From Dicyema japonicum (lineage: Eukaryota; Animalia; Dicyemida), in contig RDEW01000034.1 in NCBI GenBank assembly GCA_011109175.1, forward strand, positions 314,331 through 378,330: a stretch of DNA of 64,000 bases, given 5' to 3'. Every line of letters begins with the position of its first letter. Within the stretch, counting starts at the first letter, position 1. The notes below the pieces were generated by a model. The model saw only the letters and a program-made list of their open reading frames with translations, did not search any database and was not told the origin of the DNA. Shown one piece after another: positions 1,562 to 49,120 of this stretch. Both the position numbers and the translations under genes were made by a program.

Positions 1562-2239
1562 ATGCACACTCCACTTCCTATAATTTCTTCCGAAGACCAC
1601 AATGTACTTGAAATAGCCTCTAATTTTCAACTTCAACGTGCGTATCATAATTTGAAGGAGAAGGAACGAAGAAATATGCTAAAAGAATCTTTCAATGATC
1701 TGGAAGATATCATCCCTTCACGAAATAAAAAAGTTAACTTTTTACTTATGTCAGATGTCCCGGGTTCAGATTTTGACAACAGCATTGGAATATATTTCAT
1801 ATATCGAATTTTCCAATGATAAATTGGACGCTTACATGGAGATGGTTAAATCCTTAGACAAAGAACTCACTTATCTTCGTACTTCTGCCAATAATCTTTT
1901 TTAGAAACGTCATCGTCAGATTATTCGGAATTGATGGCACTATCTAAATCCGTGGTGGAGAATATAAAAGTCTCTGTTGTCGATTATTTGGACCCGATCA
2001 ACGGATTTTTCCAATATCAAGAAGAAATTGACATTGGATCTCGTAAAAGAAGTTTTAGTGAGATGAAAGAAGACATATGCCAACTTTATGAAATGCCACT
2101 GGATGTGTCATATTATGATAATTATTGGATTGATGAGCCTTTTAAGACTGTAGAGTTGGATAACGGGGAGTACTTGTTTATTGACGATCAACCCTCTGAT
2201 AGAGACATTCTCAATAGAATTCTTAAGATAGAAGATTAG
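1562..2239 (+). CDS. Max/Myc-family bHLH-ZIP transcription factor, 3 exons (1562-1732, 1755-1878, 1905-2239), 209 aa
   Basis: RAYHNLKEKERRNMLKESFNDLEDIIP...MSRVQILTTALEYI matches the Max/Myc basic-HLH pattern. Removing GT-AG introns 1733-1754 (22 nt) and 1879-1904 (26 nt) joins three ORF-track fragments into one stop-free frame ending at TAG 2237-2239. Confidence 0.8.
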
Positions 2240-2599
2240 TTAGTTGTGACTTTATTTCATTAAATCCTTACCTCTTTACATTAATTTTATCCCCCGTTTG
2301 CATCTTCGGTAGTTATACCTGTCGATTTTGATGAGTGATTAGTAGGGCAACCGAGAAGTTGTTTTAAAATCAAAAAAGGCCGCAACTGCGTTAAATATTT
2401 TTATTTGTTTGTTAAAACACAAAATTAGATGATATTTTTACATTTTTTGGTAGGAAATTTCAACCTTTCGTTAAAATTTTGTGAAGAATCGAGATTCCAA
2501 AGGCCATTTAAATGTCTTATGTTATGGCATCTCAGAGGCTTTTGATATCATTGAACATGACTTCCAATTTCTCTGACTCTCTTGTATCAGATCTCCCTT

Positions 2600-3360
2600 T
2601 TTTTCACAAAATGGACAAAAATGGGCTATACATGATATATTGTGGAGAGGCTGTAGCATTTTTTATCTTGAAATTCTCGAAAGTCCGAGCAACCTTCGCA
2701 CGTTTCAACGCGCAACCTGCAAGTCTCGACTGGGAAAAGGTGTCGGTATAGGCCCCATCCCAAATCAAGTATTTTCCCCGAGTGAGGGGCATAAATTATA
2801 TTTTTTGTTGAAAGTTAGAGAACTTGAATAACTGGGCTGTTTCCCTAGATAATGTCTATTGATATTCGCTTTCGAAGCCATCCAGCCTCACGTGGATCCT
2901 TTATGACCCTTTAGATCCGACGGCTGCTCGTGGGCCAAGGTTTCCTGACATCTAAACGGCGAATAGGATAAACAAGTGGACTTTCGTGATGCTTCTATAC
3001 TTCATTCTCTTCTGATCCTCGGCTTGTTTTGAAACATGACCTGGGTTCGGGACTGAAAGGACCAAATTCTTCGGAGAGAATGTGTCAACACATTTAGATT
3101 CCCAAACCAGGTTCCGACCATTAGCGAATAGGAATGTTGTCATCCCGTTAGGACGTTCTCCATCTTCTCGAGTGAGACTAGTGCAGTGGTGGTCAGCAGA
3201 GGAAAATCCGTTTTTCAAAGTAGGTTCCGACCATTAGTGAATAGGAATGTTGTCATCCCGTTAGGACGTTCGCCATCTTCTCGAGTGAGACCAGTGCAGT
3301 GGTGGCCAGCAGAAGAAAATCTGTTGTTCGATCGATCTTCGCCTCTCTGGAAAGATTTCT
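2600..3360 (-). mobile_element. CRE-clade retrotransposon RLE-domain remnants, with an internal 113-bp tandem duplication (3110-3222 / 3223-~3330)
   Basis: GKYLIWDGAYTDTFS and DGERPNGMTTFLFANGRNLVWESKCVDTFSP...AEDQKRMKY...FILFAV are restriction-like endonuclease motifs. Confidence 0.75.
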
Positions 3361-3369
3361 AGTCGATCA

Positions 3370-3790
3370 ATCATTGCAAATATTTAAGCCGACTATCATC
3401 TATTACAGCTTGGCGTTAGAGTCAGACGTGGATGCGAAGTGGGAATCCAGCGTTTAGAGAGTTCGCCAGACTATCATCTGGAGCTGAAGATAGGACCCTT
3501 TTCAAATTGGATCTTCAGAACTCATTCAACTCGAGCAGAAGGGATGTCATCCTTGACGTTTGCTTGAAAAGAACGCCAAAAATATACCCTTTTGTCCATC
3601 TTTATCGTATTCGAGTCCTTTCACCCTCATTTCGGAGATTAAATTATTCCTTCTGAGACGGGAGTACAGCAGGGTGACCCATTCGGTCCTCTAATTTTTT
3701 CTTTAGCTATCGATCATATAGTGCAAGACGTTTCTACTTTCCTAATTTATAGTACCTGAAAGAAGCCCTGAAGACCTCATTTCAAAAGTA
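3370..3790 (+). mobile_element. CRE-clade reverse transcriptase remnant
   Basis: LQLGV, FKLDLQNSFNS and ETGVQQGDPFGPLIFSLAI across frameshifts. Confidence 0.8.
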
Positions 3791-3839
3791 ACCTCGATTT
3801 CTGAGAATTTTCTGAAGATTGGCTTTTAGGTTAACTTAA

Positions 3840-4780
3840 AAAATGCTAAATGGTTATAAAACGAATAGAAGATATTGTCCCAGATGTTCGAACTGCGGAC
3901 CTATGCTTTCTTTAATTCCTCGGATGCGGGAGAACTTAAGCGACAAAAAAATTTCTGGGAAAGGTTGCCGGCAGTTTGATCCTCCTGGATAGTCATGTTG
4001 GACTTTTTTGGTTAAAAACAGTCTTTGCTTCCCAAGATGAATTTCAACTTCCGAAGTTCCCCATGTTATGATGATCAGAATCCCTATCTCTCCTTGATAA
4101 TGAAATAAAGTCAACCCTCGAAGCAATGTTAAACATACATTTTCATGACTATGGGTGGTTTCAGGCAATTTTTCCTGTTTTTAAGATTGGGAATAACCGT
4201 ACCTTCGGATACCGCATTATGTGCATTTGTCCTCTAATAGCTTTTCGAAGAATATGATGGACACAGTTCTCTTGATTAAATTATGGCTTTTTTCTTGTTA
4301 ATGCATTTGTGTCAAGTCTTGTCTTAATGGGGGGTAGTGATCTCTATGTTGGTGGTAATCTATAATTTCTATATGTTTTTTTTCATTATTGTCCTTCTTT
4401 TATTTCTAAATTATCGGAGACTATTGGTTTCTCCATTTAACTTTTTGCAAAAATGCCTCCGATTGAGTTCGAAACACTATTTTTGTTTTCTGAATTCCTT
4501 CCGGGATTCATGTACTCTGAGTTTTTTCTCCTCGATCTATATTTCATTCTGAACTAACTATTTTTCCCAATTCATCCTTCTTCGACTTTCAATATCCATA
4601 TTGGCGCAGTTTATTCCTCGTATCGTCATCGAACCTCTTATTTCCCTTCTGTTCGACAAACACCGAGATTTATTTGAGCTGTTTATTCAACTTCAGAAAT
4701 CTTCCTTGTATGCGCTCAACCAACAGGAATTGATATATTGCCATATTGAAGAGTCAATCCTCGAGAGAATTTCTTTGTTG
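3840..4780 (-). mobile_element. R4/Dong-like non-LTR retrotransposon remnant (region N-terminal to RT)
   Basis: RVHESRKEFRKQK*CFELNRRHFCKKLNGE resembles the recalled R4/Dong pre-RT motif; many stops. Confidence 0.45.
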
Positions 4781-5694
4781 NNNNNNNNNNNNNNNNNNNN
4801 NNNNNNNNNNNNNNNNNNNNNNNNNNNNNNNNNNNNNNNNNNNNNNNNNNNNNNNNNNNNNNNNNNNNNNNNNNNNNNNNNNNNNNNNNNNNNNNNNNNN
4901 NNNNNNNNNNNNNNNNNNNNNNNNNNNNNNNNNNNNNNNNNNNNNNNNNNNNNNNNNNNNNNNNNNNNNNNNNNNNNNNNNNNNNNNNNNNNNNNNNNNN
5001 NNNNNNNNNNNNNNNNNNNNNNNNNNNNNNNNNNNNNNNNNNNNNNNNNNNNNNNNNNNNNNNNNNNNNNNNNNNNNNNNNNNNNNNNNNNNNNNNNNNN
5101 NNNNNNNNNNNNNNNNNNNNNNNNNNNNNNNNNNNNNNNNNNNNNNNNNNNNNNNNNNNNNNNNNNNNNNNNNNNNNNNNNNNNNNNNNNNNNNNNNNNN
5201 NNNNNNNNNNNNNNNNNNNNNNNNNNNNNNNNNNNNNNNNNNNNNNNNNNNNNNNNNNNNNNNNNNNNNNNNNNNNNNNNNNNNNNNNNNNNNNNNNNNN
5301 NNNNNNNNNNNNNNNNNNNNNNNNNNNNNNNNNNNNNNNNNNNNNNNNNNNNNNNNNNNNNNNNNNNNNNNNNNNNNNNNNNNNNNNNNNNNNNNNNNNN
5401 NNNNNNNNNNNNNNNNNNNNNNNNNNNNNNNNNNNNNNNNNNNNNNNNNNNNNNNNNNNNNNNNNNNNNNNNNNNNNNNNNNNNNNNNNNNNNNNNNNNN
5501 NNNNNNNNNNNNNNNNNNNNNNNNNNNNNNNNNNNNNNNNNNNNNNNNNNNNNNNNNNNNNNNNNNNNNNNNNNNNNNNNNNNNNNNNNNNNNNNNNNNN
5601 NNNNNNNNNNNNNNNNNNNNNNNNNNNNNNNNNNNNNNNNNNNNNNNNNNNNNNNNNNNNNNNNNNNNNNNNNNNNNNNNNNNNNNNNNNNNNN
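4781..5694. other. Assembly gap (914 N)
   Basis: Run of N. Confidence 1.
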
Positions 5695-5765
5695 AAAAAA
5701 AATTTGTATTTTAACATAACTTCATGGGTAATTTACCGATAGTTGTATTATTGTCTAATATTTAG

Positions 5766-6092
5766 TTTCCAAAACGGGTTCAGAAGAAAGATGACATCAA
5801 GAAGCAAAAGGAGGAGGTGAAAGAGGAGGAGGCGCAAAAGAAGGATTTGAAAGATGAGGAGGCGGAAAAATTGAAAAGCATTCTACAAGCTGTTGGCACT
5901 GAAGAATTTCCACGTGATGACATAATATTTCGTGGTCCAACACGTGACTTCTATATAAAAAATTCGATTTATTCTGAGAAAGAGGCTGAGGAGAAGTGGA
6001 ATCAAGTCAAAAAGAAACACCCCGAATATGATATGGATAATTTGGTTGTTCTGCCTAAAATAATTTGCGAGAAGTTTCAAAAACTGTATTGA
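5766..6092 (+). CDS. Possible terminal exon of an unidentified K/E-rich protein
   Basis: Open frame of ~108 codons following a tttag acceptor and a candidate 21-24-nt intron; no family recognised. Confidence 0.25.
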   Translation, partial: FPKRVQKKDDIKKQKEEVKEEEAQKKDLKDEEAEKLKSILQAVGTEEFPRDDIIFRGPTRDFYIKNSIYSEKEAEEKWNQVKKKHPEYDMDNLVVLPKIICEKFQKLY

Positions 6093-7943: not shown

Positions 7944-10316
7944 TAATTAGTTCTTAATTCTCGACTGTTCTTAATAATAAACTAAGCACTCAACAGCGCC
8001 AACAAGTTATCTGCCACAGAGATGCATTTCACTAAAAAGAAATTACTTACTCTCATTTCCATACAAATCAAAAGAAATGAGATCAATCATGTATTCCTCT
8101 TCTTGGATGTCCCTTCTCCATTTCCAATTAACTATCGGATAGGACACAAGAAGACAAGCGAGTTGGATCTAAGAATCCCCGAGGTTTTTCTGTTGAAAGA
8201 AACTTGAAGATGACATTATCTTTTAAGAGTTTCGATCCTTTTTGCGTGAGTAGCCAATAGTGCAACGTTGGAGGGGAGAGGTCATCAGCACAGGTGGCTT
8301 CCCACACTTACAATAAGAAATAATTTATTCCAACGAAAATTATGGGACAAACGGGAGTACCGATGGTTTCGACTGCGCCTTGGAATGGTTATCGTGCCCG
8401 CCAGTGCACAAAAAGCTTAACAGATTACGTGAATTTAAAATATGTCGATTATCTCAGATAATTTGTTGTTCCGTACCTCAGGGGAGATCAAATTGCCACT
8501 AGTTAGTAATTGGTTATTTAAGAAAAGCTAGAGGGCCGGTCGGAAGTACCGGAGTGAGTTGACGGTTAACTTCTCAGCAGCTCAAAAAAAGAGGACGACG
8601 AGTTCTAATAGAAATATGAAATCTAAATAACCTAGAAGGTTACCAAAAATAAATGCAAGCCAATGAACTCCGAATCCTGAGAATGCCGTAATCTGTAAGT
8701 CGGAACTAAATTGCCGTTTCGCTGAGTCGAAATATTGTGTGTCAAAGTTCAATATATACGCAAGCAACAGTATTTAAAGATGATAAGGCACTGAGGATTT
8801 TCTGAGTTGTATCGATATACATGATTTTAGCCCACTTGGAGAGCTTTAACCAGAGACAACTAAAGAAGTTACCTTAAAAGACCAATGAAGAAATCGAGTC
8901 AATACAATTTTTACTTGGAAAATTTTGATAAGGGAAACTAAGCCAGATTAAACCCGATAGCTTCATAAGTTGATAGATTCGATAGTCGAGAACTACGTTA
9001 AAAGATTCTTTCCAGACTTCTTCGAATATCTCGACTACATAAATACAGACTTTGTTGATTTGCAAAAGTTCTTTGACCTCACAATCTCCACCCACTCATC
9101 TTATATGGCAATTCTTTTGATGACCAACATTTAGTCGATCAGGCGAATGATTTGAATGAAAGTCATAAAAGCAGGGAGATCTTTACCACAGTTCTTTTCA
9201 ATTCTGTGATTTTGAAAATTTTTACGATTCTCGGGATTTAAAAAATATAATTTATTATAAATTATAAATGCCGGTCGAGAATAACAATTTTAGCTTTTTA
9301 AAATTAAAACTAAAGATAACTGGTGACATTAATTTATTTCATTTAATATAATAATTAATTATTTTAAAAATTATTTATTACATAAATAAATTTAATCATT
9401 GACACGTTGACATTTTATTGTAGTGTGTCTTGTTGACATTTTAAATCCTGTAATATTCTAATTTAGTCTAAGATATAATTTTATGTACATTTGTCTTATT
9501 CTTATAGGGGTTAGTGAATAGTGGCGGAAGGCTGTTGACAAAATGTTTTCGAAGAATATTTTGATGACTTCTCATGTTTGCTTTTTCTACACTATCCTGA
9601 CTAATCAATGAATTAATGTGTCATTCAATATTGAATATTTTTTTATATTTAATTGATATTTTGGATTTATATATTAATGTTTACTGTGCATACCTGTCTG
9701 TTCTTCATCATATGCAAACTTAACAATTTCCGGAGATTTAAATCATGAAAGACGTATTCGAATCCTTGTCTGTATTTGTTACTTTAGAGATAACATCATG
9801 ATTTTTCTAAACACCTGCTGTTTGAACATACACGTTTATCATTATGCTCTCACTAGTGAGGGTCTCCTGTTTTACCACTGATTGGAAACATTACTATTAA
9901 CACTGTCATTGGAACAAAATTTCAAATTTAATAATTGAGTTCCCACGTGCCCATTGAATTTTTTTCTTGGAATATATTCCAATTGCTTGATATTTTGTTT
10001 GACATTTGATATAAAGATCCCGAAATCAACTACTGTGGAAAATTGGAGATATCCACATTTTTGTTTATTATTGTTATAAACCCGGGAATACAGGAATGAG
10101 GAAAAGCTATCTTCTATATCAAGTGATACTGGTTTCAGTGAATCTCCCTTTTTCCAGCTTTGTCTGGAATCTTTCACGTGTGTCGAAAAGGGAGAAGTTT
10201 TGTTTCAAATTTACAAGCAAACTTGAACTTACAAAGAAACGAACTCATATAATTCCTGAGATACGATATTCTGACTACGAGGACCGTATGTCTGAATTAG
10301 GAGAGACTTGATTGAA

Positions 10317-10664
10317 TTAAATTATTAACCCCGGCTTCGCCAGCAAGTGGGAACTCCTGTAGAAGGGCAATGTCAATACGGTGTTTAACCAAGTACTCAG
10401 CCAATTCGGTATGTTTCGAGGTGATTCCATTGGTGTTAAGTTGTAAGATTCTGATGGGTCTATTCTGCGGCCCTGGGTTTAGTTCAATGTCACCGGATGT
10501 CAGGAGGGATTCTTGGGAGCGAAAGCTTCGTGCCCGCTCAATGGTCGCCATCGAGATCTCCTTGAAGAGAGACGATAGGGAAATAGTGTGGTTCTTTTTC
10601 ATGTGTGCTGTGTAGGGCACAGGCACAACCAAATGACACCTCTTGGTGAGCCACAACGTCATAA
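10317..10664 (-). mobile_element. 348-bp non-autonomous Ingi-like element (5' UTR/ribozyme + 2A leader + start of APE, fused to a short 3' end)
   Basis: 13-bp TSD agacttgattgaa at 10304-10316 and 10665-10677. Encodes MATIERARSFRSQESLLTSGDIELNPGP then RILQLNTNGI...IDIALLQE, then switches to a 37-nt 3' module ending ccggggttaataatttaa. Confidence 0.85.
10588..10664 (-). ncRNA. Degenerate HDV-like ribozyme fold
   Basis: P1 (tt)atgac/gtcat(tt), P2 gtggctc/gaaccac (1 mismatch), P3 acc/ggt, GG after P1', P4 tgtgc-c-tgtg/caca-gcaca, J4/2 catgaaaaa. L3 (aaga) is non-canonical. Confidence 0.55.
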
Positions 10665-12009
10665 AGACTTGATTGAACAAATAATATGCGAGAATAAATA
10701 CTTGTATTGAATTACGGGACGCAGATCTACCGAATTCACTTTTGATGTTAAATAAAACAAATATTTTTGTTATTTTTAAAATATTTAAGTCTTAAAAATT
10801 TTTAGATATTTCTCCTTACATGTTGGTGTTACAACGAACCTTCAGCTTTTCTTAACCTTTTTTCTGGTGACCCCCGATTTGAATTTTATTTTAGACTACA
10901 TCTGGGGATGGTTTTTAGACTACATTATTTTTAATTTTGGACTGTAAGTCATAAGTTGTTAATCTTTTCACTAGGCAGCGACACTCCGTGCCTCACCTCT
11001 ATTCTATGTTCTTATACTACTATTATATTTTGATGTCTGGTCTTGAGCTGCTGAGGGCCTTGCTAATATCAACTTCAATCAGAAGACGATTCCTATAATT
11101 GGTTTCTGCGAGACACTCATCTTCTCATAAATACGTTGTCTCGAATCGTATTATCTGTTTCTCGCGAATTGCAGCTTCGAGGTGGAAAACTGCTCTAAAT
11201 CGCGCCAAAATTCCATCAATTGTTTGTTTTTAATAATATGAACGCTCGCTGTGAACTTAAAGTTCAATCAAGGAATCCTCAATTTTGGGATCATCAGTTT
11301 CAACAATCGTAGTTAAAAATTGATTTATAATCCGAGTGTTGAATGGATTGGGTGTTGAAAAATAAATTTCGAACATTGATCGATTGCAACCCGAATGCTT
11401 TTTCCATAAAAAAATAATTAAATGCGATAATCATTTCATTAAAATATTGCTGAGACGAATAATCTGGCTGATTAAATCTAAATTATTTTAATTTTTGAAG
11501 TTTTTGATGATTGACTTATTCAATATCGGCAGAATATGTCATTCAGTTCTTGTACGTAGTAGAATGTGGACATAGGATCAGTTTGTCATATAAAGAGTAC
11601 TGATCCACAAACAGATATTCTAGTTGGAATTAAAACTAATAATCACAGATTTAGTGCGATTAGAGAATTGTCCTCAAAATTATTGCCTAAGACTTTTATA
11701 TCGAAAATAACTACCCACTAATTACATTCCTCTCACGTGTCTTTGCTTCCCTCAAATTAAGGTTCTTTCCAACTGTTTACTATTATCCTCTTTCACTATA
11801 GGCTGCCTGTTTACTATTATCCTCAGAAGTTGGATGGATCGTTTGATTACGGATACTGGATTACCTAATTGTCTGACGTTTTTTTGTCTTTCTTTTTTGG
11901 TGATTCGTGGTTTCTAAATAAAAAGAACAGTGAGACAGCTCGAATCTGCAAATTGGTGTATTTTTGGGATTGAACAGCTCGAATCTGCAATTTGGTGTAT
12001 TTAATAGAA

Positions 12010-12345
12010 ATACACGTGAGATCCGGTGGCTTCTCCAGTTGATCTCTGTTGCAATCGTGAGAGGCAACGCAACGTCGATAATGTCGGCGGGGTCCACTTT
12101 GGATAGATGGCAGTTTTAAATAAAAGAATAAATTTGTGTTGGTTTAAAAAATAAATTTGTTTTTTTAATAAAAATGTAGTAGTCATTGACGAGTAAAGTC
12201 TTCAGGCCCAAGACGGTCCCTTTTCTAAGATTGCTTGAGTCACTGATATTGAAAGGGGGTAATAATCGGCGGGAAACCGAATGGCTGTTCCAAAGGATTT
12301 CTCTGGAAGTTGTCAGGGGCAACAGCCATTCCATCCTCTCAGCTG
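12010..12345 (+). mobile_element. Two CRE 3'-end remnants
   Basis: WLLQLISVAIVRGNATS and TSKVFRPKTVPFLRLL...EWLFQRISLEVVRGNSH. Confidence 0.7.
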
Positions 12346-13409
12346 GATTATTTTGATTGTTTTGTTACGTAATAATTCATTTTTGTTAAAAAAATTATAA
12401 ATGATAAATTTTTGTTTGTCTGTCTGCAGTATTGTTTTTTTAAATTAGGTAATTTTTTCTGCTCGTGATTTCCAGTGTAGTGAAATTGATTTTTATATAT
12501 CAAAGCAATGCTATGGACTGCAAGAAGCTGATCCTCGTCAGAATAAGGCTAATACTTTCACAAAATGAAGTACAATGACATTCTGGGATCAAATGAAGAT
12601 TGCCATTACGAAAACTCTTCTACCGAAAAATGAAGTGACATCCTTGCCGGTAGTACGTGAGATGAAAATGGAAGAGGGCGGACCTACTTCACCTCTTTCG
12701 GAAGTGGAAGTCTATAATAAACTATTTAAGGATGGATTTGGTCGATACATGTAAATGCTCTCTCTTTGGTCCATTCTTGAATTTATTAGTTGTGCCTGTT
12801 TGTGCTGGGCTCACCAGAGATTGTAAGTCTGGGGTGAATAGCAAACTGGAAGAAACGAATCGGGCTAGAATCTGATATTAATCATTTAAAATTCGTCCAC
12901 TTAAATATTCGATAATAAATAAGACAATTTAAAAAAAACAACCAATTATTTGATTCCAGCTTCTAATAAATCTCTGACACTTCTTGCATTCTTCTAGTTT
13001 CACAAGTGTAGAACATTAGAGCCATTGCAAATGCCTTCGAAGGAGTTCGGTGTGTCGAAATTTTAAATTTATAAAAATTAGTCATTTTTAGGTCAAAATT
13101 TTAAATTTATAAATTTAAAGTGATTTCAAATTTTCAATTTATTACTGGAGTATTGGTCTCACAAGTGAGTTATTCAGGCGGAATTCTGTATCCACATGGA
13201 TCCTTTTAAGGACAAACCAAGTTTTTTTGATCTTGTGCTGTTTGGCGTTCGTTTAAGTTTTTCTTCTTGTTGTGTCCAGCTTTTTTAAATCCGTGACTTC
13301 AGTTGTGTCTGGAGTTACAGTTAAGAACGTTCTGTCAACCTGCAGAGTATTTGCTTCAATAAAAAGTGAGTGCTTCTTTGTCGTTTGAAATAAAGTCCAC
13401 GTCATTAAT

Positions 13410-13680
13410 TAATTTATTAACCCCGGATACACCGAGAAAAGTTAAAAGTAACAAATAGTTATGTGTATCTAGTTTCCACTGCTACAGAAACAAAGTCCAC
13501 CAGAAACCAGAATAAAATGTAAAAGACGTCCATTACTGGCAGTTGTGGAAACCCCTCCAATGGAATGGGAGTAGCAAATGATCTTTTTTCGTCCCAGTCT
13601 AGCACTGGGCTCCACCTGAGAAAGGTGGATCTCATGACACACTCTAGTAGGAAGGGGAAAAGGAGGAAGAGACAAACAAA
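13410..13680 (-). repeat. Retroelement 3'-end repeat, homologous to 19265-19470
   Basis: ~200 nt of shared sequence ending ctcggtgtatccggggttaataaatt; same terminal motif as the 10317 element. Confidence 0.65.
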
Positions 13681-13879
13681 CAGAAAACCTTAACTAATAA
13701 GCCACGTAGCACCACATGGCGCCACGAGGCAATACAACAACATCATTATGTATGCTATTGTGCTCGCTCCACTTCAAAGAGCGGCTCCTGAATATTTAAA
13801 AATATAATTTTACTTGTTTGTTTAATTTATGATTTTAAATAAAAATTAATTTTTGTTAATTTCTCCGGTGCTTTTTAAC

Positions 13880-14400
13880 CTTATTTTTAAACGACTTACC
13901 CTGCCCTGAGGTTCTGATATCATTCTAACATACGCAGACGATTTAATTATTGCGAGCAGGAATAAATACGTGGATATGACAAAATCAGAACTTCAGTCAC
14001 ATAAACGACCTAGGGGTTTGGCCGTTTTCGAACCGACTTTCAATATCCACGGAAAAATATTAATATAACATTTTTACTACCAAACGAAGACAAAAGGATA
14101 CGGTGGAAATCAGCCTTGATTATTCCAATGAAAACACATCCAAGAATACTGGGAGTGACCCTGGACCCCATACTCTCTTTCTCCCAACATGTGAAGGATG
14201 TTATGGCAAGGGGCCTTTGGAAACTCAACGTCAAAAACCTTTCTAAACTCCAGGACCCAGCCGTCTTATACCACCAGTTCTTAAAGCCTATGGTGGAGTA
14301 TGCCTGTGCTACCTGTGCTTACGGAATTTCAAAGTTTTACAAGATAAATTCCCTAAGAACAAAAATGGTTCGCATAACTAATCGCTCTGCTCAATTATTC
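13880..14400 (+). mobile_element. Ingi/I-like RT C-terminal remnant
   Basis: YADDL and HPRILGVTLDPILSFSQHV...LYHQFLKPMVEYA. Confidence 0.75.
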
Positions 14401-14479
14401 CGTCCTTTACTCGACAACGCGACAGTCCGGAATAATAGTTCTGGCTTCATCAGTCTATGCGGCTCAGAGTCTGATTGCT

Positions 14480-15000
14480 TCTACCAATCAGCGATGGAAG
14501 CCGCCGGTAAACTTAAATTAGGAAAAAGCCCAGGCCTCTCCAAATTCTGGATTCAGAAAAGCTTTGTGTACTATGGAGGAGAACATCAAAAAGCTATCGA
14601 TCATGTTGAGCTCTACCGGGATCACTTAATTAGATGGTTTAACTCCTTCTTTCTTGGTGTTCCCTTTTCGAGGTTAGATAATAATAACTGCGGAAGTGGG
14701 CTTCTCCTCGAGAAGGAAAATTACATGAAGAAAATTGGTAGAACGGATTGTAGAGTGCACAAGCGGAACCCTAAGTATTCATATGCTCATGGGTAACGCG
14801 GAAGCGCTATTAAATAACTAACTTGTCGTAAATCTAAGAAATTAGCAAATGATGTGTCTCCAAGAGTTCAACCTTCTCAGGTGGGAAAACTAACGCTCTG
14901 TGAATCTCCAACTTTAGAAGATTCAAGTTTCGTCTTGGAAGATTATGCTAACTTGGACAATCTTGCAGTGTTAATTGGAATGAAGGGGGACTTTTGGAAG
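14480..15000 (+). mobile_element. RT N-terminal remnant, probably CRE-type
   Basis: KLKLGKSPGL...HLIRWFNSFFLG followed by KLANDVSPRVQPSQVG. Confidence 0.5.
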
Positions 15001-17693
15001 ACGTAGCTGTTAGAAGGAAGATGGACCTCCGATCTCTTCTGTTTATGAGAAAGTAGTAAAATTGGAAAATTGGTTTTCCTGTTCGAGGGAGTTATTGTCC
15101 CTTGGCTTGTTTACGGATGTGAGGGATGGTACAACCCATAGGAAAAACCAGATAATGTCGAGTAAGAAAAGACAAGAAGAGTTTGTATCAAATTTACACA
15201 TAAAATTGAATAAAGGTACAAGTTGCAAAAAACCCAATAACTTGGCTCTTTAGTTTGTGATTAATTTAGGCCGCTTGAATGGATAGGCTGCTTCTACCGA
15301 CAATAGCTATCAAATTTGCTGTTGAAGCCATCCAGTCTTACGTTAATACTTGGTGGCCTTTTGGATCATTAAGCCGATCCAACAAACTGTGTCATATATT
15401 GATTTTTGCAGGAAAGTGGCGGTCATGAACTGGATAAGTACCCTTGTTTCTTGTATTAGGAAAATTCATAGTAAAATAGAACAATTTAATGAAAAATAGA
15501 ACATTAAGTAGTAATATCCTTGGTTGGATCAGTTACCCTAGTGGTCAATTGATCGAATGGCTGAGGTGACTTAGCTAGGTCTAATACATCCCTTATATCC
15601 TCAATATGAATATCATTCCATTTCGAAACTCAAGAGACATAGAAAATGAAACTTTCAGATACAAAGAAAAGTCGGACGCATTTATGTCTGGGTTGGAATC
15701 CCATATGCCCCAAATTGGAGGACCTTAGGATGTCCGTCTTTATGAAGAACAAAGGAACCATTAGTTAATCACCTAATAAGATCCTTGATGCTTAAAGACA
15801 CTCTACCATTAAAAGAGTTAGCCGCAAACTATATTTAATCGTATGTCCAACAGATGAGCACGTTGTTAAAACAAAGCTCTAACCCTTCATCAGACAACAT
15901 CTTATATATCATTACTATACTCGTAGGAGTTTTCTACAATACACACGATTGATGTAATAAGTCATCGTTTCCCCTTCTATAAATAACTTAGCTGTATAAC
16001 TCTTAGGCATTTGAAGACAACTCCATCCCAGGTAAATAGTGGAATAATCTTCACTTGAGAATATTAAAGAAGCGAGAGCCCTTCATCAAGAAGCACATGC
16101 TTGTGATGCTTCTCAACTTGATTATGGTAATACTACCAGATAATTACGAGTTCAATGGAAGTTAAATGTGAGAATATACAAAAGTACATTCATTATAATA
16201 TATGCCAATTATGGGAGTCTCCATTTTAATGGAACTGTGGAGATGGCAACAACAACAAAGAAGCGTGAATTAATAATTTATATTAAATTTAAATAAAAAA
16301 TTAAATATATAACAACTTGAATTATTTTTAATAATAATCACCGGTTGTATGATTTACCACCAAGGAAGCAGAGTCCGGTGGATTTGGAAGAAACTTGATG
16401 ACACAGAGAGTGTTTGGGACTCGTGAATTACATCAGATGAATCAGAAGATAGATATCATCTATAAGTTTAAAATAATATCTCAAAGGTTAATAAGAAGAA
16501 TGTTCAAGTTATCCAACTGAATAAACATCTCCTTATATGCAGGTGTAAGATGAACTCGATGAGTAATTAGAAAGCTACGTACTGATGAGTCAATTACATC
16601 ATCCTCACGAGGTTCTATTAAAATAGTCTTTTTGAGTACCCCGTAAGGATGTCAGTTGACACATTAGTCCAACGTGAAAAATCGCCCATAAACGGGCATA
16701 CAGGGAGTTCATCGGTATCCGAAAGAAACTTTGGTAAATAATTTCCGACTCCAAAATGGGGAAAATTTCTTAATATTGAGGTTTTGTCCAAAAAGGAAAA
16801 TTTTCTTAAAAAGCGAAATAAAAAATTGTGAAAAATTACTTTTATAATAAAAATTGCTATAATATGTATTAAAAACAAAATGAATCATCAGTAGGGCCAT
16901 TTAAATGCCAATGATTTTTTAGATTTTTATTTTTTTGATGAATAAATCTGCCATTTTCATTTTTTGGTAGTGAATGCACAATATCTGCTGTAAATCTGTA
17001 TAGTTTATGAACATTGTCATGAGTTTTTGTTTGATTACATAAAAATGCTTTTGAGAGCACGTGTCATATCATTTATCACTTCATACTCTAAGTGTCTCGC
17101 TGTTATCTTCAATGCTAAGATTATCATAAAATGTCTCTAAATTTTATGAATAATTAGCTGGTGCCGTGTAGCTACCTGAAGATTTCTCTTCCTTCTTTAT
17201 AATGGTGTCAACGGATCACCGTATTCAGGAGATGTCCAATGCCTCTATCTCTTTATTCCACCGGGAGATTATTCCGTTACTTGTCGGCGAGTTCTGGCTT
17301 CAACCTCAGCTTTCCGGACAATATCATCTGAACCACTGTGCTTGGATGAGGGCTCTACTGGGACGCGTCAGATTATGGGATTAGTCAGAATGGTTTTACC
17401 CTTGATCTTTGGAATAATTTCATTCAAGAACACTGCGGCCAAAACGTTCAGTTTTGAAAAAAATGGAGTTGAGAAATATCACCATAAAGAATTATGCTCA
17501 ATAGGCAGGTCCCAGACTTTTTGAGATAAATGAAGTGCAATAGTTAAACTTTTTTGATATATTCTTATAATGTATCCAAATGTACAAGCAAACGATATGA
17601 TACGCATACTTTAAGTAGTCCCATTTCGCGGATATCGAGACAACTCGCTACACGTTCCTTATATAAATTCATTTTGTCATACATCAAAAATTG

Positions 17694-17870
17694 GCCGGAT
17701 GGCTTAATGTAATAAGTTACGGATCAAAACCATGAGGTCCCTGGTTGAATCTCGCTGCTGTCTATTCGGTTGAAGATTCCACGCATTATAATGCTTGGTG
17801 TTAACGATGTTTCAACACTGCGAAACTGGACTGTCTTCTGGGACTCCACAAAAAAAAAAAAAACGAGAAG
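17694..17870 (+). mobile_element. tRNA-derived SINE, degenerate copy lacking the 3' module
   Basis: gccggatggcttaatg...gaatctcgctgctgt...ttccacgcat...ctgcgaaactgga...A-run; homologous to 26933-27251. Confidence 0.7.
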
Positions 17871-17929
17871 TCAAGAACATTTTCAATGTCACTTCTTATA
17901 ATTTATTTCTTTTTTTTTTATTTAAAAAA

Positions 17930-18170
17930 ATAGAACTAACAAAAAGGTCATAGCGGTCGTCCTGACCACGTCTATTCTCTCTAAGGATAGCGACGTGGTT
18001 TGCTCAAATAGCCAGCAGCGCTCACGGGGATTTCCCATTAGTGCAGAAATCTGATTCCCTAGACGACTCAAGAATTCGAGCGTCACAGGGGCAAGAGAAC
18101 TAGGCGTTTCAACAGCGAACGGAAAAACAAAAATCCTCATTACCGCGTACTTTGCAAGTTTTTACCTCTC
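17930..18170 (-). mobile_element. CRE 3' end
   Basis: FVFPFAVETPSSLAPVTLEFLSRLGNQISALMGNPRERCWLFEQ followed by an A-rich tail. Confidence 0.8.
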
Positions 18171-19264
18171 GACCTTTTTAAAATAAAGTGTGATTTCTAC
18201 CTAAGGTGAGGTTTAAGTAAATAGAAACAATTTTTTTATAGAGCACAAAATGAAGTCACAAGAATTCGGTTGGATTTGACGATTTTTTCTATGAACTGTA
18301 TTTTATCACGTTCAGTCTTATCTATTCGGTGACCACGACGAATTCATTATGAAATTCGAATACACATGCTTGATTTTTGAGGAAACTCATTGGAATCCGA
18401 GTAAGTTACTAAAATGTAAAAATCAGCCCAAATTCGGGTGTTTCTAATGAAAGTTCATTTCATAGCTCATCCCCCATCATGATTCTTAATAATATCTTCT
18501 CTTTGGTCCAATCTCCTTATATGAATTCTTAATGTTTGTGAAATTTTATTAAAGATTCTTCTCTTCCTTATTCATATCCGAGGACTTCATGAATTTCGAG
18601 AGTGACTATATTGTGTCTCTATTGTTGCATGTAGTCTACCAAGACAGACTCGTCTGTTTACCTTAGACTTGGATTGCCATAATGAATCGATCCCTGTCTA
18701 TTTCACATAGGATTCTCATGAGGTTGTCGTTTCGATATAATTCTATTTGTTCCGCGTCTGCGTGATCCTCAATACTAGTCTCTAACCTTCTCCTATTCGA
18801 TCCTAGGCTCTGCAGACAAATGAGGTCTTTATCGTCCCTTAGTGTTCTGTTCATTGGTCTCAGGTTACCATTAAGAACACGAGAAGCGTTGTACCACGAC
18901 AAACTCGGAACTTTTACTATTTGAAAAACTTTTGACAGATGATCTCACAAGTCTTTCAATTTTTAATTGACTTGAATCATACGTGCCTTGAGCTTCCAAT
19001 GTTCTTAATGACGTCATTTCGTCTATGCTAACAAGAAAGAAGTTGTTTGCTTTAGTAGATATTCTAAAAATCTTATTTTGACGTGAAAAGTAGACATTTC
19101 GACAATACAGGTGGTCGACGGTTCAACCTTCAGAGTCACTTGACTGTCATACATGCACTCTCTAGATTCGAATTTGAATCTTATGTGTACTTGGCACTCA
19201 CTATTCAAACTTTGGCTACGATGTCTCCCGAGTCTGTCACCTCGTTCCATGATCATGGGAGAAA

Positions 19265-19470
19265 TATATTAATTTATTAACCCAGGATTCACCGAGAAAG
19301 ATTTTAACAGTAAATAACTACTTAAAAGAATCCAGTTTCCACTGTCATAGAAACAGAGTCCTTTACGTCACACAAGTCCATGCAGAACCACTACAAAAGT
19401 AAATGACATCCATTCATAGCAGTTGTGAAAACTCCTCCAGTGGAGTGAAAGATTGCTGGATTCGCTGTGT
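19265..19470 (-). repeat. Retroelement 3'-end repeat, homologous to 13410-13680
   Basis: Ends ctcggtgaatcctgggttaataaatt; direct alignment to the 13.4-kb copy. Confidence 0.65.
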
Positions 19471-20099
19471 TATCCTAGTTTCTTCCTAAATTCTCAGGAA
19501 TAGCTTATCTGATTATAATGTTGTACCTGCAGAAACTCATACTGGTCGAAAACGTGGGAATTCTGTTGTCCTGGTGGAATTTCATGAACGACTGTCAAAA
19601 ACTGACATTCTGATGAGATTTAGCTCTGAGGAGGTAGCCATGGCAGGTATAGACTTAGCCTATTGACAGTTTAACGTACTAATTGGGTTAATGGTAGTAC
19701 GAGATTCCTGCGATATCCTTCTTTAAGATAATCGTTGTTGAAAAGGTCATCGGTGAGTTCGGAGATATTTGATGTTCAATGTGTCTCAATTGAGGAACAA
19801 GATGATGACAGAGTCGAAGGAGGTTAAAATCGTGAAGGAAGTGCCTAGTGGACGAGTGTCGTTAGTGGAGTGGATTGGAAGAGAATTTGTAAAAGAAGGT
19901 CGGTTGAAAAATTACGTGAGGAATAAATACAAGGAGAATGAAGGAGAGACCGACGTGATGGAAGAGACTCAAATCGGAGGGACAATAGGAGGCATGAACG
20001 CAGAAGGTGACATGTATTATTTTATATATATTTCAAATTTAAAATTTTTATCTCGATTTGTGATGGTTGCCAATGTATTTCTTTGTAACGATGTATTTC

Positions 20100-34520: not shown

Positions 34521-34984
34521 CCTGGACCCTTCCTCATTTTTAAAATTTTTTTCAGAACGTTTCTTCCAGTTTTATATATTTGTGCTGGATCTTTGATATC
34601 CTCCTGAAACCATTGATCTGATCCTCCACAATCCTACTGATCGGTTCTAACAGCTTGTCGTTTTCGCCTAGACAGTCTCTCAGTTTCTTATCTAAGGAGA
34701 GCTTAATTGCAGCTCTCCTTGACTTCTCTAAAGGGATAAGATCTTTTTGGAGAGAAGAACCACCCCTCGACCCATAGTAGGCTAGGGAGAATAACTCCCT
34801 TGAAGATGAACAGGTAGGTTTCACGACTAACGTGTAACTTTTGTGTACATAAGAGCGACTGAAAAAATTTCTTCCTCCTCTCCCTTTATGAATTCTTAAT
34901 CTCCTACGTGTCCATAGTCGACTCTCAGGTAGCACAGACTGCGTTCATTGTTCACCCCCAGTGGTATTCTTTTTTCAGATGAGT

Positions 34985-36411
34985 TAAAACATGAAAGATT
35001 TCTAGCAATATTTGGTTAAGATATAGTCATTAGAAAAACTGGTGGAGGTCTATCGCGGTTCTGATGTCCAAATCGATTGTCGAAGGTGGGTCAGGGGCAA
35101 AATTCTAGCTGTTTCTCTTAGAAATTTCTCTTAGGATAGCCGGCGCTCGAGACTAGTTTCATATGTTAAAGCAAGTGATTAGAGGATTTGTGCTTATGCG
35201 GGTGAAACTATTCTCGAACACTAAACGTGTGAGAAGTGTGACTAACCTGAGTGTATTCATACGTAAAATAAGGGTTCCAAATGGGTCAGTAATGCTCATC
35301 ATTACTGCGCTGTGGGATGAACCAAACGCCTGGTTAAGGTGCTTAATTATACGCACACATGATGCCATAAAAAGTGTCAGTTGATTATGATAACAGGAAA
35401 GTGGCCTTAGGAGTAGGAAGCGTCTAAGGAGTGTGTAATAGCTAACCAGTTGAATTAATTGGACTTGAAAATGGATGGAGCTGTGGCGTCTGATCTATAC
35501 CGGGCCGTTGTGGCAATATAAGTGTTACTTGCTAGAGCGTGGAGGTAGCGCAGAAAGCCATGTGAGTACTGTGGAGTTGCTCCAGTACAGATCTTGGTGT
35601 TAGTAGCAATTACTCAAATGGGATCTTTGAGGCCTATGTAGAGAAGGGTTTTATGTGAACATTAGTTGGACATAGTTAGTGTCCAAAGCATGTTGAAAGT
35701 CATTTGAAATAACTGTTTAAGCCAAAGTGCGAAAGGAAATGGGTTAATATCCCCGAACCTGAGCTGGCTGTTTATGCGTGACGCTTTTGTCAAAGACGGA
35801 AGGCATTCGGGGAAAGTTGTTTTTTCCTTTAAAGGGTCGATTTCTCTAGAAATGGTTTAGCAAGCTAGAGAGAAGTTGTTGGTCATAGAGACCTTATCCG
35901 CAAAGGATAAAAGTTTCTGCCGTGTCCGATGCATGTGAGTCGTTTCATAAACTCCTGTAACAGTTTAAAGTCACTTGGGTCGTACCAATAACCGCACAGG
36001 TCTCCAAGTTAGCGGCTCTGGTGAATAGATAAACGCTGATAAGGGAAGTCGGCAAAATAGATCTTTACCTTGTAGAAGGAATGGCTCTATAGGTTGAGCC
36101 TATATTCTCTATTTCTGTTGTGATAGCTTGATGTTGCTTGATATAGAGGGTAAGGCATTAAACAACCAAAGTAAACTCGATAGCCGTTGACGGTTATGAC
36201 GCGTGTGATTTCCCCAGTGCCCTGAATGTCAGTGTGAAGAGATTCACTTAAGCACGAGTAAATGGCAGGAGTAACTATGAGTCTCTTAAGGTAGCCAAAT
36301 ACTCTTAATTTAATTGATGACGCGCATGAATGGATGGACGAGATTCCCACTGTCCTAATCAGCACTCTAGCGAAACCATATCCGGGGTAACGGCCCAGGA
36401 GAATCAGCGGG
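34985..36411 (+). rRNA. Isolated, highly divergent LSU (28S) rRNA fragment, probably a pseudogene
   Basis: Conserved blocks in order: ctggtggaggtc, ctgtgggatgaacc, gaaaatggatgg, cagatcttggt, aagggaagtcggcaa, cttaaggtagccaaat, gacgcgcatgaatggat, gaatcagcggg. Flanked by non-rRNA sequence. The conserved agactaatcgaacc segment is missing near 35100. Confidence 0.85.
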
Positions 36412-48246: not shown

Positions 48247-48319
48247 AATTTTCGATGTGGTTCACCTTCACTTGGAGAAAATTGGATGCCCGTATTAAAC
48301 TGGCAACTAAAAGAACCAC
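48247..48319 (+). ncRNA. HDV-like ribozyme
   Basis: P1 AATTTTC/GAAAATT, J1/2 GAT, P2 GTGGTTC/GAACCAC, P3 ACC/GGA (2 of 3 pairs), L3 TTCACTT, P1.1 GG at 48284-48285, P4 TGCC/GGCA, J4/2 ACTAAAA with C48307. Confidence 0.75.
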
Positions 48320-49120
48320 TTCTATCCCCTGTCAACCTTTTCAACGACTTCTGGAAGTCGGACTGGATGATGGCGGCTAGTGAGCGGGCGCGTAGCTTTC
48401 GCTCCCAAAGATCGGATTGGCTACTCCTAATCTTAGCTGGGGACATCGAACAGAACCCCGGGCCCCACAAAAACGTGAAATTCCTTGACATCATGAAATT
48501 TAACATAAACAGCCTCACACACAAATCAAATGAACTTTTTGCATTTCTAACTTCTCACAAAATTGATATTGCCATGCTACAGGAAACGAAACTATCAAGA
48601 AAGTCAGCGCTTGCACACTACAAGACTACTCAATTGTCCGCCGTGATCGACCGAATTCAAATAGAGGAGGCGGTGTTTTCATACTTATACACAAATCTAT
48701 TCCATTCTCCGATACTTTCGCTCAGACACAATCTCTGTTTGAAGATGACGATCACATGCTGACAACAAATGTTCTCCATCACTATCTTCGGCGATATCTT
48801 GGAGAATTGTATATGACCTACACTGGACCATAATCCAATTCTACTGTCAATCGAACTACTCTCGCCTATTGTTAGACATCGGAAAACTAACGAATTACAA
48901 ATGTGCAAAATGGGATTCATTCAGAGAAGAAACAGAAAAATTTCTATCTGACTTTTCCGTTGAGAATTTCAAATCGTTTGACGCCACAGTGAAATTTTTT
49001 AATAAAATCATCCTCAGTGCCGACGAGAAAAACATTTCAAGAGGACTAATTGCAGACTATAATCCCAATTTCACTAAAAAAATTATCTAAAAGATTCATA
49101 CAAGACGTCGACCTATAGAG
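48247..49120 (+). mobile_element. 5' part of an Ingi-like non-LTR retrotransposon (ribozyme + 2A leader + APE endonuclease), decayed
   Basis: MAASERARSFRSQ...LLLILAGDIEQNPGP at 48370-48465, then IMKFNINSL...IDIAMLQETKL; later frameshifts. Confidence 0.85.

Follow-up and report, generated by a model that had tools for sequence, protein, structure and literature searches.

We analysed an element of 348 nucleotides (nt) that lies in a 64,000-nt stretch of the genome of the dicyemid Dicyema japonicum (contig RDEW01000034.1 of assembly GCA_011109175.1, positions 314,331 to 378,330 of the forward strand); this whole stretch is called the window below, and positions are counted from its first letter. 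The element occupies positions 10317-10664 and is on the minus strand, its 5' to 3' direction being 10664→10317. An earlier reading, made from the letters and their translations without database searches (the sequence-only reading), had described it as a RIME-like derivative of a long interspersed nuclear element (LINE), with about 310 nt of a 5' end joined, just after codons for LLQE, to 37 nt of a 3' end, and with a self-cleaving ribozyme at its start. We compared the region 9200-11800 with Logan contigs from four public runs (including X1, X2, X5 and X6). The bipartite layout is confirmed, at 311 plus 37 nt, and contigs of other copies break at 10353. The 5' part (10354-10664, minus strand) comprises the 5' untranslated region (UTR) and the start of the open reading frame (ORF), up to the LLQE codons, of a LINE that has a 2A peptide ahead of an apurinic-type endonuclease (APE), as judged from its homology to a second copy in the window (at 48247), from phmmer protein searches and from contig breaks in X5 and X6. 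The 3' part (10317-10353, minus strand) is a LINE-type tail, a hairpin CUGGC-GAA-GCCGG followed by GGUUAAUAAUUUAA, that is unique in the window and is matched by 26 contigs of run X2.

From its 5' end the element begins with a 77-nt structured head (10664-10588), followed by a short 5' UTR and an AUG at 10551. This AUG opens a residual ORF of 84 codons (10297-10551, minus strand) which, from its translation and from phmmer, is made up of a 27-amino acid leader, 38 amino acids that resemble the N-terminus of an apurinic-type endonuclease, and 18 amino acids derived from the tail and flank. The leader ends in LLTSGDIELNPG/P, a textbook 2A/StopGo motif (GDIELNPG/P; DIELNPGP is encoded by 10491-10468), and the predicted 2A sequence LLTSGDIELNPGP stands at residues 16-28, in frame and directly before the APE N-terminus. 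In phmmer, residues 16-66 align with the N-terminal ends of APE proteins such as P0004 and P0023. The endonuclease-like segment ends at LLQE (the GAG codon is 10356-10354), where the sequence switches abruptly to the 37 nt (10353-10317) that end in GGGGTTAATAATTTAA; the ORF reads through this tail into the flank and stops after 84 codons. With 348 nt in total and only the 84-codon residual ORF, the element has no reverse transcriptase of its own, and it must therefore have been inserted in trans by target-primed reverse transcription. Its head is not derived from a tRNA, 5S or 7SL RNA in the manner of many short interspersed nuclear elements (SINEs), in that ARAGORN finds no tRNA-like sequence in 9000-20000 and a search for Rfam small RNAs gives nothing credible in the element region at E ≤ 10; the sole Rfam match in the window that reaches the gathering score is an unrelated rRNA-like fragment. 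Folding of the 3' tails and of a conserved block around the AUG (below) gave no significant z-scores.

The sequence-only reading had reported an exact 13-base pair (bp) target-site duplication (TSD), and the 13-mer agacttgattgaa is indeed present without mismatch at both 10304-10316 and 10665-10677, the right copy adjoining the 5' end of the element. In run X2, from the same sample as the run that represents the region best, a 323-nt contig joins 10303 to 10665 and so skips exactly 361 bp (348 + 13), leaving an empty site at whose joint 13 letters fit either side. Since the empty-site form is present in X2, the 13-mer is a true target-site duplication and not a chance repeat, and the 348 nt were retrotransposed as a unit. 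The empty-site contig carries a linked T>C change at 10248 with a depth of 638/1004, and the filled form has a depth of 366, so that filled and empty forms coexist in the X2 sample at a ratio of roughly 1:2 (if the DNA came from pooled animals, "heterozygous" here means "polymorphic in the sample"). The flanks carry many half-depth variants in X2, which is consistent with allelic or pooled polymorphism. In a second sample, run X5, a contig over 10047-10382 represents the filled form at the same locus. The presence of both empty and filled forms indicates that the insertion is young and still segregating. Single-copy word depth in X2 is near 1000, half-depth variants make up 1-2%, GT..AG skips in X5 measure 52-58 nt and GC content is near 35%, values that suit a small, strongly heterozygous genome with tiny introns better than that of an octopus; the published D. 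japonicum genome is 67.5 Mb with 36.7% GC, a heterozygosity of 1.24%, a mean intron length of 38 bp and 49% repeats (PMC6736024).

The two parts of the element have different relatives. The 48247 copy (plus strand) is the only relative of the element within the window; the first 311 nt (10664→10354) align to it with a mean column identity of 75%, the encoded peptides are 51% identical over 72 amino acids (tblastn E 3.6e-19), and the homology is lost immediately beyond the LLQE codons, which both copies have. A search of the window for the 37-nt tail with up to 3 mismatches gave no second copy. The contigs show the same boundary from both sides: in all 26 X2 contigs that match the tail, the match stops at 10353 and gives way to GCCGGCGACCATCA... 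(agreement 0.99), and contigs of the 5' part from X5 and X6 begin at 10353. Position 10353/10354 is thus a breakpoint relative to other family members on both of its sides, and, because contigs from other copies share the tail and then diverge exactly at 10353, we take the 37 nt to be the 3' end of the family. Its terminal ~18 nt (CCGGGGTTAATAA-TTAA), preceded by a short hairpin, are also common to the ends of retroposons at 13409 and 19269 (minus strand), and they look like a shared LINE 3' recognition tail, from which it appears that several unrelated bodies share one LINE tail. The partner with which the element shares its 3' part, here seen in 26 X2 contigs and two other retroposon ends, would be the autonomous LINE itself, which would be expected to end in ...CTGATGGTCGCCGG-TTCCCACTTGCTGGCGAAGCCGGGGTTAATAATTTAA and to have the same 5' head.

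Three further observations concern these relatives. The regions at 13409-~13600 and 19269-~19480 (both minus strand) are two older retroposon or LINE 3' regions, about 76% alike, and both end in a short hairpin plus CC(G/T)GGGTTAATAAATTAA. A 40-nt start-codon block (GATGGCG...GAGCGGGC.CG.AGCTTTCGCTCCCAA) is 87.5% identical between 10513-10552 (minus strand) and 48369-48408 (plus strand), the families that share it being otherwise 60-75% alike, and its two limits, 10513 and 10552, are exact breakpoints in contigs of further families. Run X6, which has a different organism label, contains a 436-nt contig that is 99.6% identical to the element over 10353-10583 only and bears another head in place of the ribozyme-like module (identity ends at 10583); this near-identity could stem from a close relationship, from contamination of host by parasite DNA or the reverse, or from transfer.

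The sequence-only reading would have been undermined by a single copy, and the element is not one. Its summed word depth in X1 is 2100-4650, where the flanks have 50-190, and in X2 51,000-122,000, where the flanks have 900-2900; such sums are not true copy numbers, but they do show that the repeat has at least tens of copies. The excess over the flank is about 160-fold at 10340 in the tail and about 25-fold at 10433 in the 5' part. At 10433 most of the depth is A, and the copy at 10317-10664 has G. Two other loci could be recognised from the contig-summary tables (loose ends and the letters between joints, as distinct from full sequences), from which all of our findings on other loci are drawn. 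The second locus, in X5, has different flanks, with about TCCGGCTGC repeated at either end. Except for a 27-nt gap, the 5' part of this locus is identical to that of the 10317-10664 element; it ends at the same LLQE-side breakpoint, after which come 38 extra letters before the same 37-nt tail. The second locus thus keeps 75 nt of 3' end, and the 10317-10664 copy, which keeps 37, differs from it by a further loss of 38 nt in the 3' part. Where multiple copies with one junction and different TSDs had been expected, the second locus shows the 5'-side breakpoint between other flanks, with 38 more letters on the 3' side of the junction. Since the same 5' breakpoint is present at the second locus, a 5'+3' derivative was already a heritable template. 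The second locus also matches the element from 10311 onward, and the 3' end of the element therefore probably extends as ...TTTAA-TTCAAT. The bases TTCAAT are at the same time the first six bases of the TSD at the 10304-10677 locus; in the left TSD copy the six element-proximal bases, attgaa, may instead be the element's own 3' end or a microhomology, and the true TSD is 7 to 13 bp long.

The third locus is represented by an X1 contig in which another flank abuts 10664/10665. The 5' ends of the three loci agree to within 0-2 nt, much as had been predicted of 5' ends that pile up at one position, except that the second locus bears 6-9 extra bases upstream of the head. We set aside X1 loose ends at 10610 and 10618 that read AGATGTGTATAAGAGACAG and its complement, which are Tn5/Nextera adapter remnants and not biology.

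Run X5 has a depth of 50-100 to the left of and within the element and of 1-4 to its right (over 9374-11336), and its skip joints 9449→9508 and 10865→10918 have GT..AG borders on the plus strand and skip 52-58 nt. From this depth pattern and these joints X5 looks like RNA, in which case transcription of this region would appear to end close to the element, with the element in antisense orientation (there is an AATAAA at 10693).

The 66-amino acid N-terminus was compared by phmmer with 1.84 billion representative proteins. There were 32 matches, in several of which a 2A motif stands directly before an Exo_endo_phos domain; one of them, on the Tara Oceans metagenome contig L001, has 2A and Exo_endo_phos followed by an ORF with RVT_1, and another is annotated in Octopus sinensis (P0023, on L003). 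None of the 32 exceeds about 60% identity, the relatives being only about 50-60% identical. In exact-protein look-ups none of three ORFs (the 84-amino acid ORF, a 127-amino acid extended form and the 48247 ORF) had a recorded match. A word-indexed search of proteins with the first of these gave no candidates either, and a search with P0023 for parents of the same family gave two distant matches only.

We asked whether the head has the fold of a hepatitis delta virus (HDV) ribozyme, using three divergent heads, those of the 10664 copy, the 48247 copy and L003 (L001, L004, L005 and L006 were left out, having different 5' regions). All four helices P1-P4 can be drawn, nested in HDV order and starting at the predicted cleavage site, as a pseudoknot within the 77 nt 10588-10664 (minus strand). 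P1 is 10664-10658 with 10637-10631 (5 of 7 positions paired), P2 is 10654-10648 with 10594-10588, P3 is 10647-10645 with 10640-10638, and P4 is 10627-10604. The loop L3 is AAGA (10644-10641), a GG follows P1 at 10630-10629, and J4/2 is CAUGAAAAA (10603-10595) with a candidate catalytic C at 10603, directly after P4. The sequence-only reading had observed that P1 and P4 differ in sequence from those of the 48247 copy and still pair, and the same is seen when L003 is included. The P1 strands, wholly different in each head and paired in all, are (UU)AUGAC / GUCAU(UU) in the 10664 copy, AAUUUUC / GAAAAUU in the 48247 copy and (GC)GCGUC / GGCGC(CG) in L003; among random pairs of 7-mers from the window the probability of at least 5 contiguous pairs is 0.009. 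Likewise, P4 is UGUGC-C-UGUG / CACAGCACA in the 10664 copy, UGCC / GGCA in the 48247 copy and GAUAC / GUAUC in L003. P2 and P3 are conserved in all three heads, and the GG follows the paired 3' strand of P1 after 0-2 unpaired bases. P2 (GUGGYUC / GAACCAY) is a perfect 7 bp in the 48247 copy and 7 bp with one G·U in L003, and P3 is ACC / GGU in both the 10664 copy and L003 and (A)CC / GG(A), with an A·A mismatch, in the 48247 copy. P1 and P4 covary across three divergent elements, and the start of the element thus has a genuine and conserved RNA fold, its helices in HDV-like order.

The 10664 copy has, by the same comparison, the weakest of the three heads, and the catalytic core seems damaged. 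Only when the P1 strands are set in register with those of the 48247 copy does base 10664 fall at position 1, as had been claimed; the first two bases, UU, face UU, and the helix proper, AUGAC/GUCAU, has five pairs and starts at 10662. P2, P3 and the 3-nt J1/2 are conserved with respect to the 48247 copy, except that P2 contains a C·A mismatch in the 10664 copy. Its L3, already suspected to be degenerate, is a mere 4 nt, compared with UUCACUU (7 nt) in the 48247 copy and UUUUCU (6 nt) in L003, and in the register shared with the relatives AAGA offers no partner to G35 G36, so that P1.1 does not form. J4/2 is 9 nt long, compared with ACUAAAA in the 48247 copy and CUAAAAA in L003, which have in common CUAAAA(A). 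None of the three heads matches an HDV-type Rfam model at up to E = 10, there being only noise, although these ribozyme models are narrow and ignore pseudoknots; the minimum free energy (MFE) z-score of the head is -0.74. A scan with a loose HDV descriptor gave about 4,000 matches in the window and was dropped as uninformative. In the 10664 copy only, an alternative register can be drawn with P3 as CUC/GAG (10650-10648 / 10642-10640) and L3 as ACCAA, which would provide the CC needed for P1.1 and take up the base that is mismatched in P2; this register requires a 2-nt bulge and a 12-nt J4/2 and is not conserved in the relatives. No high-depth variant letters are listed in 10588-10664, though the depth there is 60-120 times that of the flank, which weakly suggests that the amplified copies share the core of the 10664 copy. 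Given this core, self-cleavage by the 10664 element is conceivable and, we think, doubtful.

Taken together, these results are probably best explained by a very recent and still polymorphic insertion of a bipartite non-autonomous LINE of the RIME/NARTc/Vingi-N/R2-SIDE type. An ancestral internal deletion would have fused the first 311 nt of a single-ORF, 2A-headed APE LINE, containing the HDV-like fold, the 5' UTR, the 2A leader and the first 38 amino acids of the endonuclease, to the 3' recognition end. Its RNA would be transcribed by RNA polymerase II (Pol II), with a start at its own 5' end or as a portion of a host transcript, and the reverse transcriptase of an autonomous LINE would bind the 3' hairpin and UUAAUAAUUUAA tail in trans. 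At the second locus the 3' end finishes in six bases that match the nicked target, ...ATTGAA-3'; this target end may have base-paired with the 3' end of the RNA (UUCAAU) and primed cDNA synthesis, and such microhomology would be a common feature where LINEs that lack poly(A) tails insert by target-primed reverse transcription. The 5' end, at the first base of the P1 register, would have come down from the parent, and the data can be explained without self-cleavage, though it may occur. The RIME-like, trans-mobilised character proposed by the sequence-only reading thus has support for the 5'+3' derivative lineage, as seen in the TSD, the empty site and the second locus. Several points weigh against this explanation. 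The autonomous parent of the exact family was not retrieved by protein searches, and the labels "LINE 5' end" and "LINE 3' end" therefore rest on relatives and contig breakpoints; the word depths merge full-length and short copies; protein searches and two metagenome DNA scans yielded no further copies; and the exact 37-nt junction was found, in two samples, at the 10317-10664 locus only. In the metagenome scans a 21-mer adjoining the junction had no match, and a 22-mer of the tail matched L002 at 4410-4431 by chance, this being a bacterial-looking contig in which the match falls between two ORFs and nothing else is shared.

Could the element instead be a working ribozyme SINE, in which an active HDV-like head of 77 nt cuts the element out of host co-transcripts, sets the 5' end at 10664 and replaces a promoter? 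The HDV-like helix order at the exact 5' end, the covariation of P1 and P4 in three elements and the precedent of NARTc/L1TcRz and the R2 SIDEs (PMC3383444, PMC3414825) are all in accord with such a mechanism, as is the alternative register (P3 CUC/GAG, L3 ACCAA), which restores a CC able to pair with the GG of P1.1. The agreement of the 5' ends at three loci to within 0-2 nt also fits, but it is not diagnostic, because a fixed start site, cleavage of the parental RNA and full-length copying would equally be expected to give common 5' ends. The head itself speaks against this mechanism: its 4-nt L3 cannot form P1.1 in the shared register, P1 has 5 pairs, P2 a C·A mismatch and J4/2 9 nt, no Rfam ribozyme matches any of the three heads to E = 10, and the MFE z-score is -0.74. 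In addition, the 6-9 bases upstream of the head at the second locus are bridged to it by an X5 contig, so that, if X5 is RNA, some transcripts on one strand or the other are uncut; the lack of high-depth variants in 10588-10664, suggesting that the amplified copies share the same core, is weak evidence in the same direction. We therefore judge a working ribozyme SINE unlikely, and the sequence-only reading's claim that self-cleavage stands in for an RNA polymerase III (Pol III) promoter has no support in a head that, in the register of its relatives, lacks P1.1 and has a 4-nt L3, a 5-bp P1, a mismatched P2 and no Rfam match. A narrower version, in which the amplified lineage still cuts itself from host transcripts by means of the rewired core (P3 CUC/GAG, L3 ACCAA giving the CC of P1.1), would be slightly less likely again.

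We give about the same low probability to a one-off product, formed when reverse transcriptase jumped within a single RNA of the parent or of a longer derivative, the 348-nt form never itself having been a template. Template jumps are known for such enzymes (PMC3414825), and the restriction of the exact 37-nt junction to the 10317-10664 locus (in two samples) and the failure of the protein and metagenome look-ups to find another copy are what such an origin would leave. It is the second locus that tells against it: with an identical LLQE-side breakpoint there, a 5'+3' derivative already existed as a heritable template, and only the extra loss of 38 nt could be private to this insertion. For an internal deletion of a full-length LINE after its insertion here we found nothing in favour, and it is highly improbable, since the alternative form in the same sample is a precise empty site and not a longer element, the insertion is young enough to be polymorphic with TSD and ORF intact, and the same 5' breakpoint is found at another locus.

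As a bipartite non-autonomous LINE, the 348-nt element is of a known kind. Elements that combine the two ends of a parent LINE have been described for Ingi (RIME), L1Tc (NARTc), Vingi-1_EE, RTE and R2 (SIDEs), and the link between 5' ribozymes and bipartite LINEs has been discussed explicitly (PMC5786205). The closest parallel is with the trypanosome elements RIME (from ingi) and NARTc (from L1Tc), which are composed, as the 348-nt element probably is, of both ends of a single-ORF, 2A-headed APE LINE (PMC3383444, PMC4035085, PMC5786205). The likeness extends to an HDV-like ribozyme fold in the first ~77 nt at the exact 5' end, mobilisation in trans and flanking TSDs; in NARTc the L1Tc ribozyme lies in the first 77 nt (PMC3383444). 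The 348-nt element differs from them in having an animal host and no sequence similarity to Pr77, in a tail made of a hairpin plus UUAAUAAUUUAA and not of poly(A), in keeping an AUG, a 2A leader and 38 amino acids of APE, and in its non-canonical L3/P1.1 core. The R2 SIDEs of Drosophila consist of a ribozyme and a 3' end (PMC3414825); they resemble it in having joined a 5' ribozyme to a LINE 3' end by internal deletion, in their target-primed reverse transcription by the protein of the autonomous element and in their variable 5' junctions (PMC3414825). R2, however, inserts at a specific site in 28S rDNA by means of a restriction-like endonuclease, whereas the 348-nt element lies in ordinary DNA and is derived from an APE LINE. 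The hedgehog derivatives of Vingi-1_EE and the bipartite RTE, Ingi, Vingi and R2 elements have, as here, 5' and 3' ends and no full ORF, and Kojima (2018; PMC5786205), in a passage that cites Kojima et al. (2011), reports that bipartite elements drive copy bursts. Unlike the Vingi elements examined by Odon et al., in which no 2A was detected (PMC3708506), the 348-nt element has a 2A motif. An active 2A directly before APE has been published for the mollusc element Ingi-1_AC (PMC3708506); this Aplysia element and other animal 2A-headed APE LINEs are autonomous, whereas the 348-nt element keeps only the leader and 38 amino acids of APE.

Two features elsewhere in the window bear on its annotation. 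The rRNA-like fragment mentioned above lies at 34781-36399 (plus strand) and matches the eukaryotic large subunit rRNA model (Rfam RF02543, 443 + 200 bits, model positions 665-2388); with its frequent mismatches and internal gaps, and in a non-rDNA context, it looks like a diverged rRNA pseudogene or retrocopy. Positions 4781-5694 are an assembly gap of 914 Ns, and the low GC content of 4001-6000 and the long ORFs on both strands at 4601-5719 are artefacts of that gap.

No new kind of mechanism is revealed by these findings. The idea put forward in the sequence-only reading has already been published for NARTc/RIME and the R2 SIDEs (PMC3383444, PMC3414825, PMC5786205). What is new is the host lineage, the retained 2A mini-ORF, the direct demonstration that the insertion is currently polymorphic, and the brevity of the 3' part. 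The polymorphic insertion means that this LINE group is active in the D. japonicum genome now or was so very recently, and that it spawns head-plus-tail parasites as do trypanosome ingi/L1Tc, Vingi and R2; the link between a ribozyme-type head, a 2A leader and bipartite LINEs is thereby extended to another animal lineage. If the rewired core were to prove true, the family would represent a currently active, promoter-less, ribozyme-processed retroposon with a translatable 2A mini-ORF in a small animal genome with tiny introns. In either case the element offers a natural minimal substrate, in which 37 nt of 3' end were enough for one retrotransposition event, and a natural test of the need for HDV-like cleavage, since a family with a non-canonical core has still spread.

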